Shown: positions 7,597 through 56,929 of the stretch, piece after piece
Position numbering within the stretch: position 1 is the first letter of the stretch
Layout of the letters: every line of letters begins with the position of its first letter
Source: Chlorokybus atmophyticus
Taxonomy: Eukaryota > Plantae > Mesostigma and Chlorokybus algae
Assembly: GCA_009103225.1 (NCBI GenBank)
Contig: RHPI01003642.1
Coordinates: 218,451-282,450 of the forward strand
DNA length: 64,000 bases
Direction: 5' to 3'
Notes under the pieces: generated by a model
What the model was told of the DNA's origin: nothing
The model's database searches: none
What the model saw: the letters and a program-made list of their open reading frames with translations, nothing else
Translations under genes and position numbers: made by a program

Positions 7597-7668
7597 GCCA
7601 CTGCACTTGTCTCGGCGCTGTGAGTGTGAGCGTGAGTGACATTTGGGTTGGCATTTGTTGGGTCACTC

Positions 7669-10600
7669 ATGGCGGCGGCGGCGGCGGCGGCGGCGCCGTC
7701 GGAGTGGTTGGCAGAGCCTGGGGGCTTTTGCTTTGGCGTTCCCCCCAGGACAAGGCGGAAGAGTAGACAGCTGTTGTCCAGGCGGGCGGTCGTCAGGGCA
7801 AGCGCCGCAGCATCTCAAGAGCCAGGGCAAGGCAGTGATGAGGTTGCCAGACGTGCCGTCGTGGTCGGCGGCGGCTGGGCGGGGTTTGGCGCCGCTCACC
7901 AGCTGTTTAAGCATGGCTTCCAGGTCCGTTGCCACAGCTTCAAATGCACGCTTTCTGCAAGTGGCAGAGCTTTGTCAAACCCTCGTACATGCTTCCGCCA
8001 AATGCAGGTGACGCTTGTTGACGCCGCAGATAACCCTGGCGGTCTGTCCAGTGGCTTTCGCACCGCCAATGGCCGCCCGGTTGAAGCTGGCATCAAGGGC
8101 TTCTGGTGAGCATTCACAGAAGGCATGAGCATCACTGGTCGCATGCGGCATTGCTGTGCATGCGTTTGTGCTGCCATGCAGTGTGGTGGTTGTTGACCAA
8201 AACCAGTGCATGAATATGTGCTGTTCTTGGGATGCAGGTACCAGTATCACAACATCTATGCGCTGATGGACGAGCTGCAGCTTGTGCGTAACCGACAGCG
8301 TATGCCACGCAGCATATGAAAGAGTGCTCGCATCTGAAAGGCATGTCGTAGCGCTGCAGCGCAGCTGCCAGCCATCAAACTAACTCGTATCTCATGCGTT
8401 GCCTTTATGCAGGAGCCGTTTACAGATTGGACTCGAAGCACGTTCTATTCGCCTCGCGGCATAGTGGTGGAATCACCAATCTTCCAGGAGCTCCCCCGTT
8501 TGCCAGCACCGCTGGGGAATCTGGTGTACACAAACCCATACTTCAGGCATGGGCATTGCTGTTGGCCCTCCCTCAGACCTTTGCTTAATACATGCCAGGC
8601 ATATAGGTCATGTTGTTGTTTGCACAGAAATCTCCCGCTGCTTGACCGCCTCAGCGCCTTGCCTCTGCTGCGAGCGCTGCTGGAGTTTGATGTGGTACGC
8701 TACGCACTGTGCTTTCTGTGCACATTGCACATATAGCAACATGTATAGAAGACAATGTCATGTGTACATGTACAGTGCAGGATGAGGCAACGTACAACCT
8801 GTATGACAAAATGACAGCACGCGAGTTGTTCAGAACTGCCGGCGTCTCCAAACGGCTCTATGACGACTTCCTGCAACCAATCCTGCTCGTGACTCTGTTT
8901 GCACCCGCTGAGAAACTTTCAGGTGCGACTATTCACCATGCTTACAATACCACAACTGCTTGCACAACCATTAGGTGTTTGCAGAAAGTCTTTGCGGTTC
9001 GACTGCCTTGGTTTCTGCTCTGAAGTTTAATCCATGTGTGTGGTTGTCACAGCTTCCGCTGCACTCGGAGCTCTCTACTACTACGTGCTCGCGCATCAAG
9101 CGGACTTTGATGTTAGGTGGTGCAAAGGCTCAGTAGCAGAACGCATTTTCACGCCATGGGTCAACAAGCTGCGGGCTCAGGGTGCACAGATTACCGGCGG
9201 CAGGTTGGTTGAGAAAGTCAGCTGCAACGATGCTGGGCTCGTGTCAAGTGTGACCACAGGTAGTGGCCAAGTTTTGGGGTTGTCAATATGATCGTGCAGC
9301 GTATGTGCCGTTGTGTATTTTGCACATGACAAGGTGGGTTGCGCAGTTGACAAGGGCGGAGAAAAAGAAACCATACCAGCTGATGTTGTCGTGTTCGCTG
9401 TTGGCGTCAATGCGATGCAGGTGACTTGCAAGTGTTGCGTCGCTATTGTGTGAGTCATCGAGCGCATGCTTCAATCCTGCGGCTGAGCCACTTGGCGAGG
9501 AGCTAGCAAACACTGGCATGCAATATTTTAGGCGGATGTGATTTCTCAATCATCCACACCTGTGCATCAGTCACTACCTGGGGACATCGCAACCGCCAAC
9601 ATGTCAACACAGACACTTGTGCTATGCAGAAAGTACTAAGCCAGAGTCTGTGCCTGCAGAAAATTGTTGCTGCATCACCTTTGCTGGCGGGGCGCAAAGA
9701 CTTCACAGCCTTTGCAAATCTGGGCGCTGTTGATGTGCTGGCAGTGCGTTTGTGGCTTGACAGATACGTGACAGTGAAGAACCCTTCCAACGTGTTTGCC
9801 AAGTTTGATTCTACAACTGGTGGCACATTCTTCGACCTCACTGTGCTGCAGCAGGAGGTGAGGTGTGGACGCAATGCAGACTAGGTTGCTCCATTGGAGG
9901 AGATTTGTTCATTCTGAGCGGCATGCCTACAGGAAGGCTTGGCAGCAGCGGTGCCCTCTGGTGGGACTGTTGATGAATTTGGACAAGGGTCGGTAGTGGA
10001 GGTTGACTTCTACCATGCGTCCCAGCTTCTCCCGTTGTCCAACGATACCCTTGTCCAGCTGGTCAGCAGTTGACACTTGTCAGAGCATGCTGACTGTTAC
10101 GCAGCACCTTGTGATCAACATCTGCATCAGTACCCATATCCACATGTCACTCTGTGCTATTTCTCCAGTGTTTGCACAAGTATCTGGCTGGCTGCGAGCC
10201 TGCATACGCCGCCTGCAAGGTGCTCGACAGCAGTGTGTTGCGCTTCAAGGGTGCGGTGACGCTGTTTGGTCCAGGTTCCCACCAGCACATGCCAACCACG
10301 CAGACAAGCATCCTCAATGTGTTCATCGCCGGTGACTGGCTCAAGCAAGGCCCCGGGTCTCATGGTGCACGCGGGTTGTCACAGGTCAGTGATGTGCTTG
10401 CAAAGATGCATATAGTTGTTACTGTGCAGTTGGCCTGTGCGGCCTAATTCAGTCAAGAATACTTACCCAGGCGCATACTGTACACAGGAAAAGGCATATG
10501 TCACAGGTTTGCAAGCAGCAAATGCAGCAGCCGGTTGGCTACCCACACAGCCCCGGCACTATGACATGTTGCCAGTTCCCATCCTTCCTGTAGAGCAGGA

Positions 10601-10694
10601 TGAAGTCCAATTTCAAGTTGGCAAGTCTTTGTTCAGAGCAACAAGGCAAACCCTTCAACAGTTAGGACTTGGCAGCGTTTTCATTGGACCATGA
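7669..10694 (+). CDS. Probably plastid-targeted FAD-dependent oxidoreductase, PDS/ZDS-like amine oxidase family
   Basis: Ala/Arg/Ser-rich transit-like N-terminus; Rossmann motif VVVGGGWAGFGAA; EAGIKGFWYQY; FDVRWCKGSV; FIAGDW; QEKAYVTGL; about 12 exons. Confidence 0.85.
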
Positions 10695-10973
10695 TATATA
10701 ACTCGCGAAACCGTTCTGCTTTGTGTATGGCTCATTTTGGTCTGCACCTGAGCTTGCATTGTGTCCACCAGTGTTCTTGGTCGTACTTGGAAATCATCTG
10801 CAATGGCAGTAATTGTTGCCATCATGCTTTAGCTGACTGTTTAGCATTATCATCCTGTCTCAGATGGGGGCACAACAGAATTCCGTAGTGCTTGTGACTT
10901 GCGTCGTGTGCAATCATTATTTCTCAAAAGCTATTTCGCAAGAGCTGTACAGAGCTTGGGCTTATGTGCACAA

Positions 10974-13900
10974 TCAGCCCGCACTGGGGCGGGTTTTGTT
11001 GTAAGCGCTGAGCAAAGCTATGGCGCAGATGGATGCCGCAAAGGCCTTGGTGGGAACCTCCTTGAAACCCTTGGATCCCGAGTCGTACTTGTGAAACTTG
11101 CTCACCATCTGCGCCTCGATGGTGGAGGGACCAGCTCCACATAGCCTCTTGACCTGCATGTGTGAGAAGGTGAGCACAGACGTTGTGTGAAGTGCATGAG
11201 TGACTTGCACAGAACCTGTACACACCTCTGCGCGTTCCACATTAAGAGAGTACAGCCCCTTGAAGATGGTGCTTCTGTCGTTCTTGAACAGCACGACAAA
11301 GTTGTCACTTGCACACTGGTCGAGTACTTGAAGCACCTGCGCAGTATGCAAGGCGCGGGGTCAGGGGGCTTGCACCATGGTAAGCAACAGACGCATGGCT
11401 CAGTGTTCTCGATTGGCATGGGCGCACCTGAGTGTTGTCCTCCTTCTTGGCAACACCAGCCAGGCACACCGTGTTGAGCGCATTGCGGACAAGTTTGCGG
11501 TTGGACATGCGCACGGGTGGTGCATACAGCACCAGCCCGCTGCCGCCGTTGTTTGCATTACCATTGCTGCCCCCGCTGGGTGGGGCAGTCGCAAGAGACG
11601 ACAGTGGAGCTTGCTGTTCTGCTTGCTGTTCGTCCTCCTGCTGCTGTTGTTGGCTATGCGTTGGTTGTTGCACTTCTGCATGTTGAAGTTGTTGTCTTGG
11701 TGCTTCTACTGGTCGTCGTTCAGGTGCCTCTGCAGGAGGTGGAATGGAAGGCTGCTGCTGCTGCTGCTGTTGTTGTTCAAGTGAAGCACGCTTCGGTCGT
11801 TCCAAACCTGATACTCTCCTCTTTGTTGATGATGGCGGTAGGCCGTCGCGCCTGGCCTTGATCACCTCCTCCTCCGTCGCCTTCTGTTGTCGCGCCAGCA
11901 GAAACCTCTCCCTCTTCTTGTCCAACTCCACCTGAGGATAACACAGCAACCCTCAGCAAATATCACACCTTCAGACTCAGGCTCAGCTAGTATTACGACT
12001 GTTGCTCACTTGAACGCGGGTCTGGCGGACTTTCCAGGCATCTTCCGAGTTATTAGCCTCGCCATCACCATCCTCGCCCTCGACATCATCTCCAACATGG
12101 TCCGGATTGTTGCTGACTTCAAACGCCGCGCCTCGGCTTGTGACAGTAATGGGCGTGATGATGTCGGCGCCGTTGTCTCTGCTGGCAAACAATAGGTGCG
12201 CGCGACGATGCTGCGGGACATTGGCTCTGATGCTAACTTCCTCTTCTTCGTCGCTATCATCCGCATCTTGACGATATCGCTCCGCGCTCAAAGCAATCGT
12301 GAAGCCACCACCTTTGCTACCATTGCTTCCGCTGCCGAGGAGGTAGCCTCTGTAGGCGCCGGCGTTGGCAATGAGGATGCTGCCACTGCACGAAGCCAAT
12401 GACGGAGTAGCCGCATCCACTCCATTGTCATGGTCATCACGGATAACACTGTCTCTTGGCGACGAGAACTCCACCTCATCTGGAGCATTGAGAGACTCCT
12501 CATTTAGAACAGCACTTTGCTCTCGCGCACTTTGCGAACAGCGTAACTGCGTGTGACTGCTGCTGCGCCTTGCATCACTTTGAGAGCTTATGGATAAGTG
12601 CTCCCGTGTTGTTGTGGTGCTGTCGTCTGCGGTTGCTGTGATGCATTCCATTGCAGGGGAGACAGCAATTTCGCAGCTTTCAGCATTCCTGCTACGCGTG
12701 CGGCTCTTATGCAGTGTCATGCTACGCCTTGCTATGGACCCGTCACCCAGAACGGTGGCGGACAGGCGTGCCCCATGTGTGAAGTGTGTGCTTGAGATCA
12801 GCTCGGCTTCGCTGTGAGTCTCGATGCTGTTGCAGTGGCTCTCGCGCGCACTCCCAGCGCAATCATTGGCCTCGTCTAGTTCTGCATGGCTTCTGTCAAA
12901 AGTGCTCTCCTCGGCACCAACACCGACGCCAACATCTTGGTGTGTAATGCTGCCCTGCCCTTTGCTTGATGGGCTTCCAACCTAAGACGAGATTACACTT
13001 CAAATGAGAGTTGGTTCCTTCAAACACAAACAAGTATATGCTCAACTTGACCCACCTGAACTCCCAGTTCTGCACTCTCCCTGCGTCGTACTCGGCGGTG
13101 TTTGCGTTGATACCGATCAGCAACCTCCACAACATCATTGTTGTCCTCCTCTTCCTCTTCCTCTTCCTCTTGTTCCCACTCAAGCCATGCATTGACGCTG
13201 AACCGCGCCCTGTCCGCGATGCCCGGCCGCAGCGCCCGCATCGCAACCGACTCGCTCATAGCCTTGCTGTTGATGTGGTGCGGCTTTTGTTTGTTGTGCT
13301 TCGCTGCTTGCGGGGTTGTCGAAGATGTTGTTAACAAGGACGAGGATGAAGACGATATTATTGCAGAGGCTCGCACGGAGCGCTCTGCTGTTATGGCGCC
13401 TTGGGTGGAGACCGTTGGTGAGGTTGCACCTGTCCGCGTCTTTGTTGTTGGGCTGTTTGTGCTTGTGCGTGCGGGTGTCTTGGGTTTTGTTGCTCTTGTT
13501 GTTGTTGTTGCTATTGCACTCATACCAACAGCACTTGTCTTATATGCTGCATGCCCATTCGCATCCACGCTTGTGGTTGCGGCAGAGTTGGAGGAGGACC
13601 TCAGTGATGATCTGGTCGTTGTCAATGGCATGGATGTTGATGTCCTCATCGTGGGCGTCGCCGACATTGGAGGAGGCACTGGCAGCAGCGGTGGCAACAC
13701 AAATACGGGACCTTCGGGCGCAATGTGTTGTTGTTGTCTCGTAGCAGCAGACCCAATCTTGTTGCCCTTCAGCAGACTCAGCTTGCTAGTTGCATAACCT
13801 CCCCCAACCACACCAGCAGCGGCAGCAGAAGAAGCAGAAGCTTGGTCACCGCCATCGTTACTCTTCCGAACAACACCGTTTCCTGTTTGCTCTGCAGCAC

Positions 13901-15923
13901 ACGCTACAACATCAACATCTTCAACACTATCATATGTAGTAGTACATGAAACAGTAGTAGCAAGCAAGACTGTGAGAGAGTGATACCTGCTTTGGGTGCA
14001 TCAACACCCCACTTAGGGCTTGTCTTTGTCTTCTCTATTCTTCCCCCTCTTTGAAGCTGTAGTTTTGTAAAGGCTTCAGTAAGAAACGCCAGTAGGCTTG
14101 GCTTGAGCTCTGCGTGCGTGTATAGTAGATCCTCTACAGTGAGTGGGAAGCAGAGGTCGAGGGCCGCGCACGCCTCGTGCACACGTGCAATGTTGCGTGC
14201 CTTATCACCCACGCCAAGCCGCGTGCCCACACCCCACGAGATGGACTTCACGTCCAACGCAGACGACGAGTAGTAGCTTAACAGGGCTGCCACGCAGCGG
14301 CCGTCACCGCAAAGGTCCAGCAACACGTCCTCCGCCACCAACCCTACCCTGGTGAAGAAGTGATGTTGGGTTGTGGTGTTGGGAACAATGTGAAGGGTGT
14401 GCGCGTCGACAAGTGAGGGTGTGTACTTGCTGGCGGGGGGGCTGAGACGCAGAACGGCGTTGACCCAGAGGAGGAGGGCGTCCTCCGCATCGTAAGGTCG
14501 CTCGCGCCTGTCGTTGTAGTCTCCCCCTCTCAACAACCTGTTCCATGTGTTGTTTTGGTACACGCACACGCACAATTCCATCATCTTCGCACCCTTACCC
14601 ACCCGTACCTCACTTGGGCGACGACGGTGTCGAGGTCCGCGTGCTTCGCAACGTACGCGGCCATGACGCCGTCCGTGAGCACATTGATGCGGTCGTCATC
14701 ATCATCGTCGGCGTCATCACCAACATCAGCGCCGATGCGAACCCCGTGCGCAGACACGGCCTCGCGTACGGCCGCCAGGCGCACGTTGCGTGGCGCAGCG
14801 GATGCAACCTGCGTATGTGCTTATGAGTTGAATGCGCTGCTTACTGAGTGTGTGTGTATTGCGTGCAGGGGGGTGATTGTTGTTATGCATGTGTCTGATG
14901 GTTTGGGTCGGTGTTACTCTTACTGCTGGGCAGGCGTCTAGGAGGAGGCGACGGCATGCTCTGTAGTGCAGCTCACCGGAGGAAAGCTCCTGCAAGTCTG
15001 CATAACTCTGGACAAGACGCACAAGCAAGGCCTGGTTGGAGCGGCAGTGATAGACTTTGTACATGCATTGTACATGCTGTTGCTTATATTTATGCCTACC
15101 TGTGCGTATCCGCTAACACTTGCTTCTGCTCCAGCATCTTGATGGTTCTCATCATCCTCGACGCTGCTATTGCCGCTGCTACTGGCCATGTGCGTGAGCC
15201 ATGTGCGTCCCACCCGCGCAAGTGCCTGGTGGTGATGTTAATCATGACAACGATATTGGCAAACCGCGACCGTGACGACGATCAAGAAGCAAAGGCAGGC
15301 AACAATGCATATGTATTTGTTAGCTAAATGCATACTCGATTGAGCTAGGCGTATGCTTACTCAACGTCATATATATGCTGTGTCAAAGTATGTGGTTACC
15401 AAGATACAACGCTGCTTCTGATGCGTTTGTACAAGTATGGGAGTGTGTTTCTGTCCGTTTGTTTCGCGCTCTTGCACACATTCAGCAGGTCATGAGTTAC
15501 TTAGTGCAGCGCTCATAGCAATGTATAAAACAGCAACTACTATCACAGACACAAATTCTAGCTATTCAGTCCGTCACCATACTTAGCACCAAGCACACAA
15601 CCAGACAGCACTACCTGTGTATGGCTTGTAGGCGCATCCCCATATATAGTTACACAGTTAGTAAGAGCTAGCTTCTTGCTGAACCGCAATCGCTGGAGAG
15701 TGAACAGCAGACTTAGCGAACAGCACACTCAGCAATCACTGTACGTGAACCATGCGCAATGCATCTACCTGACCCAACTGTGCGCAGTGTATAACCCCAT
15801 GCCATACATATCCTTGCGTATACACCCTGTGAACACAAGCTGCAAAAGTGGATGAAGTGGCACCTGCTGAAGGTCGTAGTCCGCCAAGCTTGCAACCCGG
15901 CAATCCCTGCTTGCATACGCCAT
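10974..15923 (-). CDS. CAMSAP: CAMSAP/Patronin-family microtubule minus-end protein (N-terminal region, CH domain, coiled coil, CKK domain)
   Basis: N-terminus SLADYDLQQ|ALARVGRTW; LSSGELHYRAC; DGVMAAYVAK..LDTVVA; PYDAEDALLLWVN..DLCGDGRCVAALLSYY (CH); KKRERFLLARQQK (coiled coil); SNRKLVRNAL..CLAG..NFVVLF..FKGLY..GAGP..KYDSGSKGF (CKK). Confidence 0.85.
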
Positions 15924-55117: not shown

Positions 55118-56929
55118 ATGGCTGGAGTGTACCCGCCGTACAGGCGATCACCTCCAGGCGCTGAGTATGGAGGAGGGCGTTCAGCTGCTGCTCAACCATA
55201 TCCAGAAGGCCGCTCCCGTTCGCGTTCTCCTCTTCGTGATCGGGGTTACAGCAGCCGAGGCGGAGGCGGAGGCGGCCATCATCAGCGTGCTGTCTCACCC
55301 AACAACGACCGCCGCAACATGAGCAACAGCATCCGTCCACGCGGTTCCGAATATGATGCAAGCAGAATGGGCGCAGGCGGGAGCTACAGCGGGAGGCAAA
55401 GGTATGATGGTGATCGCATGGACAGGCAGTATGGTGGTGGGCGCGATGGTGGGTTAGACAGAGACCACAGCCGCGGGTATGCGAGTGGGCAGAGGGGAGG
55501 GGGGACAGGGGATCATTATGATGAGTATGGGTATGCCTCGCGGGCAGCAGCAGCAGTGGCTGGAGGGGGTTATGCACGCATGTATGAGCCTGAGCGGGAT
55601 GCTTATCACCGTTCAGACAGGCCCGATAGATCTGGCCCTGGTATGTATGACAGCTACGCAGCTAAACATTCAGACAGACCGGCGGACTACTTTGGGCGGT
55701 CGAGAGATGGGCACTATGGTGAGGTCCCGGCTGTGCCTGGCCGCTATGGCGCCATGCCAAGCGAGCATCATCGCTCTGCTGATGGTTACACAGCGTCGCG
55801 AGGCCATGCAGGGAATGGCGCAGACGCATCGGTGTGCTTCTATTGTTCACGCCCAGGTCACTTTGCTCGCGAGTGCCCAGAAAAAATGGAGAGAGGAGGA
55901 GGTGGTGGTGGTGGTGGGCGCGCACCGTACTCTTCGCGTCCCAGAGATGGGCCGAGCGACCCGGACGCGGAACCCAAGTGCTACGAGTGCGGGCGCCGCG
56001 GGCACTTTGCTCGGGAGGTACAGGAAACTACTACTACTAACAGTGTGACAGAGGGTGTTTATAATAGAGCCGCTGCTGCTGCTGCTTGTGTGCTACTGGA
56101 CAATTGTCATCAGCATCGACTGCCAAACCAGCTGCTGCCCTACTACAGCCACAACGTACCCTGTGCAGTGCCCTGATCGCCACCCAGGCAACGCCAGAGT
56201 GGACAAGTGCTACCAGTGCGGCAATGTGGGACACATTGCGCGAGAGTGCCCAACCGGGAGGTCGGCTCCCATGGACGTTGCCGCACCCAAGACAAGTTCC
56301 CGGTATAGCGACGTCCCACCTGCAAGAGACATCCCTCGCTTTGAAGATATACCTCCTAGAAGAGACAGCTCTCGATACGACGATCGCACGCGCAGACGGG
56401 AGACTTTATTCAGCGATGCTCCTGGACGTGAAGCCAGTGTTGCCGTGATGGCGCCTCCTGCACCAGACTTTGCTGACGGCAGCGCCGGTCCATGCTTTGC
56501 TTGCGGCAAACCAGGACACTGGGCGCGTACTTGCCCAGAGAAGGATGCGCGTGGGCAGCAGTCTCGCTATCCTGCGCCAGCCAGACCCATGTACAATGGT
56601 GACGGTGCAGCAGAGCGAGCGCCACGCAGCGACAAGTGTTACACCTGCGGCCAACCAGGCCATCTGGCACGCGAGGTAACAACTTGAGAGTATGACGTTG
56701 ATTAGAAATTTGTTTGGCTGACTTGTTGCATGCACAGTGCCCAGACAGTGCTGGACGGGATCGCAGTGGTGCACGTGATCAAGCGGAGTATGCCAGACCG
56801 CCCTCAGCTGGGCCCAAGCCGGATGTCAGGAGCAACCGTCTTGATGAGGATCTTGATAACTATTTTGGGGATCATCCTCGGCGCAAAAGAAGGCCAGAGG
56901 ACGATGAGGTGATGGAAGGGCCCATGTAA
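55118..56929 (+). CDS. RG/RS-rich protein with five CCHC zinc knuckles and a C-terminal LDxxLDxY motif
   Basis: CFYCSRPGHFAREC, CYECGRRGHFARE|C, CYQCGNVGHIAREC, CFACGKPGHWARTC, CYTCGQPGHLARE|C; RLDEDLDNYF near the C-terminus. Confidence 0.85.

Follow-up and report, generated by a model that had tools for sequence, protein, structure and literature searches.

A probable CAMSAP/Patronin gene of the streptophyte alga Chlorokybus atmophyticus and its relatives in the green lineage

The window we investigated is a stretch of 64,000 nucleotides from the streptophyte alga Chlorokybus atmophyticus (contig RHPI01003642.1, positions 218,451 to 282,450, assembly GCA_009103225.1), and it carries on its minus strand a gene of the CAMSAP/Patronin family, whose members protect the minus ends of microtubules in animals. 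We consider it very likely that this is a genuine nuclear Chlorokybus gene under selection, that it encodes a family member of about 1224 residues, and that it was inherited vertically in the green lineage, with orthologue-like relatives in Klebsormidium and Tetraselmis. An earlier reading, made from the sequence alone and called the sequence-only reading below, had placed a CAMSAP of full architecture at 10974-15923. These coordinates are exactly the ends of the gene, and the protein is a real member of the family, with its nearest relatives in Klebsormidium (a streptophyte), Tetraselmis (a chlorophyte) and Cyanophora.

Domains and gene model

The C-terminal CKK domain is split over three exons (8-10). 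The contiguous open reading frame (ORF) at 10974-11351 of the minus strand matches the Pfam family CAMSAP_CKK (PF08683) with an E-value of 7.5e-20 (71.6 bits, cut-off 27), and the N-terminal part of the domain, on the preceding exon 8, matches positions 3-33 of the same profile (E 4e-5). In a PDB sequence search the three exons aligned in order and in register with CKK chains of human and mouse CAMSAP1/3 (6qus, 5m54, 5m5c, 5lzn and 1ugj); exon 10 did so with an E-value of about 3e-8, and exon 9 aligned to 5m54 and 1ugj. The CKK domain that had been read from the sequence is thus present and agrees with the solved human structures.

Upstream of the CKK domain the gene encodes a CH domain of the CAMSAP type. 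Pfam CAMSAP_CH (PF11971) matches the CH exon (13988-14536, minus strand) with an E-value of 1.7e-9 (37.8 bits against a cut-off of 27) and the raw ORF with 3e-9. In tblastn searches the proteins of Klebsormidium (E 1.7e-14), Cyanophora (9e-14) and Haliotis (3e-12) matched the CH exon; a PDB sequence search with the CH ORF gave no match. The AlphaFold model of the exon, calculated from an 11-row alignment, has a mean pLDDT of 68 with well-predicted core helices. Every top Foldseek match to this model is a CH domain, as are all 50 entries listed by VIA-align (Z 7-8.8 over about 100 residues), and the structural matches include EB1, alpha-actinin, fimbrin, SPEF1 and MICAL. The predicted fold resembles CH folds only, which together with the Pfam match bears out the earlier assignment of this domain.

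The gene reads from an ATG at 15923 to a TGA stop at 10976-10974. Our model comprises ten exons and nine introns (638, 68, 115, 71, 68, 74, 78, 91 and 72 nt, from 5' to 3'), all of them GT-AG, and the 3675 nt of coding sequence (1224 codons plus the stop) contain no internal stop. It was built from reading frames, splice sites, RNA joints and homology, with the phases verified for each exon (Table 1), and lies in a window whose DNA is overall eukaryotic in character, with about 52% GC and short introns. No Pfam family matched the linker exons 6 and 7 in the per-exon search. Two candidate features were rejected. The segment 15700-15611 has phase 0 on both sides and could have served as exon 2, but joining exon 1 to 15225-15100 gives the motif spacing of the animal proteins; a 60-nt version of intron 5 (13986-13927) is in frame but meets a stop at 13904, and the 68-nt form (to 13919) is required.

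Table 1. Exons and predicted introns 5 and 6 of the CAMSAP-family gene, in window coordinates
Feature	Coordinates	Strand	Length (nt)	Content and boundaries
Exon 1	15923-15864	minus	60	ATG and 'ADYD' opening of the N-terminal motif; phase 0; donor CAG/gtgcca
Exon 2	15225-15100	minus	126	Rest of the YD...A.......W motif; phase 0/0, AG and GT sites
Exon 3	15031-14924	minus	108	'ELH/ELY' box
Exon 4	14808-14609	minus	200	Pre-CH helix; donor AG/gtacgg brings the CH back in frame
Exon 5	14537-13987	minus	551	CAMSAP-type CH; fold core ~14039-14494, Pfam match 14117-14332
Intron 5 (predicted)	13986-13919	minus	68	GT..AG; GC 0.38; removal restores the frame and is needed to connect the CH exon with the remainder
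Exon 6	13918-13056	minus	863	Ser/Thr/Ala-rich linker, probably disordered; 287 open codons
Intron 6 (predicted)	13055-12982	minus	74	CAG/gtgggt ... tcttag/G; GC 0.39; removal restores the frame
Exon 7	12981-12010	minus	972	Acidic/Ser-rich linker; 324 open codons
Exon 8	11931-11428	minus	504	Helix LDKKRERFLL ~11848-11931, Gln-rich linker, N-terminal third of the CKK ~11428-11538
Exon 9	11336-11226	minus	111	Middle part of the CKK; Lys at the positions of human R1528 and R1535
Exon 10	11153-10974	minus	180	C-terminal part of the CKK and stop codon

Animal-like accessory motifs had also been proposed, and we compared them in exon-wise local alignments with 1000 shuffles each. The score of the ELH box on exon 3 was reached by none of the shuffles against Klebsormidium, by 12 against Littorina and by 29 against Haliotis, and that of the pre-CH helix on exon 4 by 5 (Littorina) and 7 (Haliotis). 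Exons 1 and 2 are weak when taken alone: the alignment of exon 1 with Haliotis residues 11-29 was equalled by 107 of the 1000 shuffles, and exon 2 aligns with residues 30-43, directly following exon 1, at a similarly weak level (about 0.1). Joined to each other, they reproduce the YD...A.......W spacing of the CAMSAP1-like proteins of the molluscs Haliotis and Littorina, and the first four exons are collinear on the Haliotis protein (11-29, 30-43, 74-87 and 134-161). The helix LDKKRERFLLARQ on exon 8 matches LDEKRAHFLLERQ in Klebsormidium, and a similar motif occurs in Rhodelphis; the same pattern found no counterpart in either of the two mollusc proteins. We take this helix to be the one that precedes the CKK domain in vertebrates. 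Support for the N-terminal motifs is thus moderate, better for exons 3 and 4 than for exons 1 and 2 considered singly.

Relatives in the green lineage

An exhaustive phmmer search with the CKK ORF against 1.84 billion representatives returned 133 matches, none of them above 48% identity. Among the named matches zoosporic fungi are numerous, several of them with a CAMSAP1 or CAMSAP2 annotation; Cyanophora paradoxa, Rhodelphis marinus and molluscs were recovered as well. The CKK domain of Cyanophora used as a query led to Klebsormidium nitens KFL_000770250 (P0261, 2045 aa), and the Klebsormidium CKK domain led in turn to a CKK protein of 1425 residues in Tetraselmis striata (TSEL_010705, P0270); a protein atlas searched with the Chlorokybus CKK ORF and with the Klebsormidium CKK domain returned nothing.

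KFL_000770250, which carries the automatic UniRef name 'Calponin-homology (CH) domain-containing protein', has Pfam matches to CH (E 2e-10), CAMSAP_CH (1e-6) and a C-terminal CKK (5e-27). It is the top match to the CH exon and to every CKK exon (79%, 53% and 41% identity, the first of these over 28 residues of the CKK part of exon 8). Klebsormidium is also a streptophyte alga, and its protein resembles that of Chlorokybus in the ELH box, in the helix before the CH domain and in the LD.KR..FLL.RQ helix. It exceeds the Chlorokybus model by about 800 residues and has at its N-terminus some 450 additional residues, among which lies another CH-like segment. This segment (W...DGR..L) is found in residues 1-450 of the Klebsormidium protein and residues 1-60 of the Tetraselmis protein and is missing from the Chlorokybus model; either it was gained in the Klebsormidium and Tetraselmis lineages, or an upstream exon is missing in Chlorokybus.

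Two further relatives belong to the Archaeplastida. The Cyanophora paradoxa protein tig00000737_g3816 (P0007, 1606 aa) is the second-best match overall after Klebsormidium, and its CH domain has the motif ERPYDAEDALLLW in common with Chlorokybus; the other is the CKK protein of Rhodelphis marinus (P0075). Unlike in Chlorokybus, Pfam detects only the CKK domain in these two proteins. The CAMSAP-like proteins of zoosporic fungi (Spizellomyces SPPG_01254, Chytriomyces KAJ3223327.1) combine a C-terminal CKK with a weak N-terminal domain of the CH type that is less similar to the Chlorokybus gene, and they are evidence of a wide distribution of the family beyond animals. The animal proteins (CAMSAP1-3, Patronin and PTRN-1) have the same order as that predicted for Chlorokybus, i.e., N-terminal module, CAMSAP_CH, linker, helix and CKK, with about 30% identity to Chlorokybus in the CH and 38-45% in the CKK domain; however, the coiled-coil content is much shorter in Chlorokybus. 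Every named non-animal holder of a CKK domain that we found (chytrids, blastoclads, Cyanophora, Rhodelphis, Tetraselmis, Klebsormidium and Chlorokybus) has flagellate stages, a pattern that may point to a connection of the family with microtubule roots or the flagellar apparatus.

We calculated a maximum-likelihood tree from the C-terminal two-thirds of the CKK domain only (108 columns, 22 labelled rows), in which Chlorokybus is represented by its contiguous ORF, with the 72-nt intron, which is in frame, read through. Chlorokybus groups with Klebsormidium plus Tetraselmis (support 82/88), Cyanophora is the weakly supported sister of this group (75/65), and animals (99/95) and fungi (97/93) each have a clade of their own. 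With Tetraselmis on a long branch, the tree may be taken as supportive of green ancestry, not as decisive.

Transcripts, origin and possible function

RNA contigs of sequencing runs were compared with 5801 nt around the gene. One contig from run X1 (2829 nt, depth 64) spans from 10891 in the 3' untranslated region to 14104 inside the CH exon, where it extends as far as the last helix of the domain. In this contig introns 7, 8 and 9 are spliced at precisely the sites of the model (with the ambiguous cut shifted, CT..AC on the plus strand), and exons 8 and 9 have their flanking introns removed on both sides. Expression and splicing are thus certain for the CKK exons and for the conserved helix. 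The end of the contig at 14104 may mark an internal transcription start or the end of an antisense RNA, or may result from 3' bias.

Contigs from a related taxon (run X3 of the same study) are 90-95% identical to the window, and one is about 91% identical over 15152-15254 in the region of exon 2. The 32 listed differences in exons comprise 19 synonymous and 13 non-synonymous changes, with 10, 3 and 19 at the first, second and third codon positions; within the CKK domain 12 are synonymous versus four non-synonymous. This pattern fits a functional gene that is read in the predicted frame under purifying selection.

Several observations weigh against the reading of the gene given at the outset. 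The predicted introns 5 and 6 are retained in the sole transcript contig, and each puts a stop in frame. The same contig skips 168 nt in frame within exon 6 (13418-13585) with GT..AG on the plus strand, which could reflect a merged spliced antisense transcript, an indel between strains where the sequence is of low complexity, or an artefact. The contigs toward the 5' end are short, unspliced and of depth about 4 versus 64, and exon 1 has zero coverage in the runs compared; the RNA check that had been proposed for the 60-nt first exon (15864-15923) therefore found no contig. The N-terminal CAMSAP module of Pfam (PF25532) matched none of the four short exons taken singly, and CAMSAP_CC1 (PF17095, the spectrin/calmodulin region) matched no exon at E-values up to 10; the Haliotis control gave 1.6e-48 and 2e-15, respectively. 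The Chlorokybus protein is missing from the exhaustive-search library, as evident from the absence of any match above 48% identity, and from the word-indexed library, so that an independent gene model is lacking. Finally, the CKK domains of Naegleria and Phytophthora bind the microtubule lattice with no preference for minus ends (PMC6868217).

The claim of a full architecture is only partly right because CC1 was not detected: the CH and CKK domains stand and the N-terminal module has moderate support, and the continuity from CH to CKK hangs on two introns that are unspliced in the sole RNA contig. The CC1 region is no requirement for membership in the CKK family outside animals. As to co-transcription of the domains, one contig does reach from the CKK exons into the 3' end of the CH exon, and it still contains introns 5 and 6.

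These transcripts could mean that a single protein reaching from CH to CKK does not exist, and that the gene yields a truncated CKK product (e.g., with a start in exon 7) or expresses CH and CKK separately. The beginning of the deep contig at 14104, its two retained introns with their stops, and the shallow unspliced 5' contigs speak for such an arrangement. However, canonical removal of introns 5 and 6 restores the frame over the 863- and 972-nt exons, and their status as real introns is argued by canonical splice sites, by low GC (0.38-0.39 versus 0.54-0.58 in the flanking exons), by lengths that fit the other introns of the gene (68-115 nt, the first excepted; 72-91 nt for those confirmed by RNA), and by the joining of frames of 287 and 324 codons. 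Moreover, the Klebsormidium and Cyanophora relatives have a CH-like domain and a CKK in one annotated protein, and the depth of contigs is no basis for ranking the parts of a gene. If an unstranded assembler had merged in an antisense transcript, this would explain both the retention of introns 5 and 6 and the plus-strand GT..AG skip. We regard truncated or separate products as rather unlikely and infer a single CH-to-CKK polypeptide. An origin of the gene by contamination, or by recent horizontal gain from a zoosporic fungus or an animal, is most improbable, notwithstanding the many chytrid 'CAMSAP' proteins among the top named matches of the first search. The divergent neighbour on the plus strand (16489 to about 18000), about 0.6 kb from the CAMSAP start, encodes an aminomethyltransferase (glycine-cleavage T protein) whose top match is the Chlorokybus atmophyticus protein jgi/Chlat1/5096/Chrsp33S05113 in EukProt (93% identity over an exon part); its next matches are all green algae or land plants, among them Closterium, Chlorella, Selaginella and Zingiber. 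This places the contig in the green lineage, and a non-plant contaminant, which the sequence-only reading had named as a way to be wrong, can in practice be excluded. The window is uniform in GC content and intron style, the top matches to the CAMSAP gene are Klebsormidium and Cyanophora, the CKK tree joins the gene to green algae outside the fungal and animal clades, and the sister taxon has the gene too. A contig search for DNA encoding the Chlat1 neighbour protein found nothing. The short gap between the two divergent genes suggests a shared bidirectional promoter. The protein libraries contain the neighbouring Chlat1 protein, but neither of the two searched has an entry close to the CAMSAP product. 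The public gene set of Chlorokybus thus probably lacks an annotation of the CAMSAP gene or has it mis-modelled, and surveys based on proteomes would have overlooked it.

If translated as modelled, the protein would begin with a helical module like the N-terminal one of CAMSAPs, followed by the CH domain of the CAMSAP type, a long linker of disordered sequence and the short conserved helix, and would end with the CKK domain. In the solved complexes of CKK domains with microtubules, including human ones, the domain is lodged like a wedge between protofilaments, at the intradimer site (PMC6868217). By analogy, the Chlorokybus CKK most likely binds there and would thereby stabilise free minus ends or the adjacent lattice, with the CH and N-terminal part and the linker supplying partner binding and self-association. 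Binding and stabilising minus ends or adjacent lattice is the most likely function. However, minus-end specificity cannot be read from homology because some CKK domains bind the lattice with no end preference, and we would put it at about an even chance. The alternative, a CAMSAP homologue with a lattice-binding CKK that acts as a general microtubule-associated or flagellar-root protein, is a serious possibility, if short of an even chance. In the human CKK, N1492 tunes minus-end selectivity, which is lowered by its mutation, and R1528 and R1535 add affinity (PMC6868217). In the 6qus alignment, with human residues counted from the 1474-1613 construct, Chlorokybus has lysine at the positions of both loop-3 arginines, which together with the reported lattice binders and the flagellate stages of all named non-animal holders favours this alternative. 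However, the asparagine at the position of N1492 is retained, loop 3 is still basic, and a preference for minus ends has been proposed for the ancestral CKK domain (PMC6868217), all of which argue for a minus-end protein.

Evolutionary meaning and other features of the window

Land plants are reported to have no CAMSAP family (PMC10980349; table in PMC5371999), and the family has been stated to be animal-only (PMC6678760), whereas it has been proposed that the last common ancestor of eukaryotes already had the CKK domain (PMC6868217). In land plants, SPIRAL2/TORTIFOLIA1 stabilises free minus ends (PMC5839793, PMC10980349); it is presumably a functional analogue, unrelated in sequence, with a TOG domain and a p80-katanin-like domain and no CKK.

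The simplest reading, given that the nearest relatives of the gene are in Klebsormidium, Tetraselmis and Cyanophora, is the one already drawn from the sequence: the streptophyte ancestor had a CAMSAP that was lost later. The genes of Chlorokybus, Klebsormidium and Tetraselmis show that early streptophytes, and before them the ancestor of green plants, had the family, and the loss would therefore fall inside the streptophyte lineage, where it could be dated through Chara, Coleochaete, Zygnematophyceae and bryophytes. The implied novelty does not hold up. Our literature search found no paper that connects CAMSAP with Chlorokybus, Klebsormidium or streptophyte algae, and none that discusses KFL_000770250; however, the latter was already public with its CH, CAMSAP_CH and CKK domains, as was the Tetraselmis CKK protein, and the ancient origin of the CKK domain had been proposed. 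The Chlorokybus gene is a further data point for a streptophyte CAMSAP, not the first.

A more tentative and, in our view, doubtful extension is that the CAMSAPs of streptophyte algae are working minus-end regulators, so that an animal-type system would have persisted until after the Klebsormidiophyceae split off and would then have been replaced by SPIRAL2. If true, this would be a dated and testable swap of the minus-end machinery, linked to the rise of plant-type arrays. A CKK domain from the green lineage is now also available for asking whether minus-end recognition is ancestral.

Two other features of the window lie outside the CAMSAP gene. A convergent neighbour on the plus strand (7636-10694) has an NAD(P)/FAD-binding Rossmann motif (NAD_binding_8, E 2e-6) and is likely an oxidoreductase of the amine-oxidase or desaturase type; its 3' end (10600-10793) has high RNA depth. 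At 55118-56687, also on the plus strand, ORFs with multiple CCHC zinc knuckles (E 8e-22) encode either a Gag-like retroelement protein or a cellular CCHC protein.

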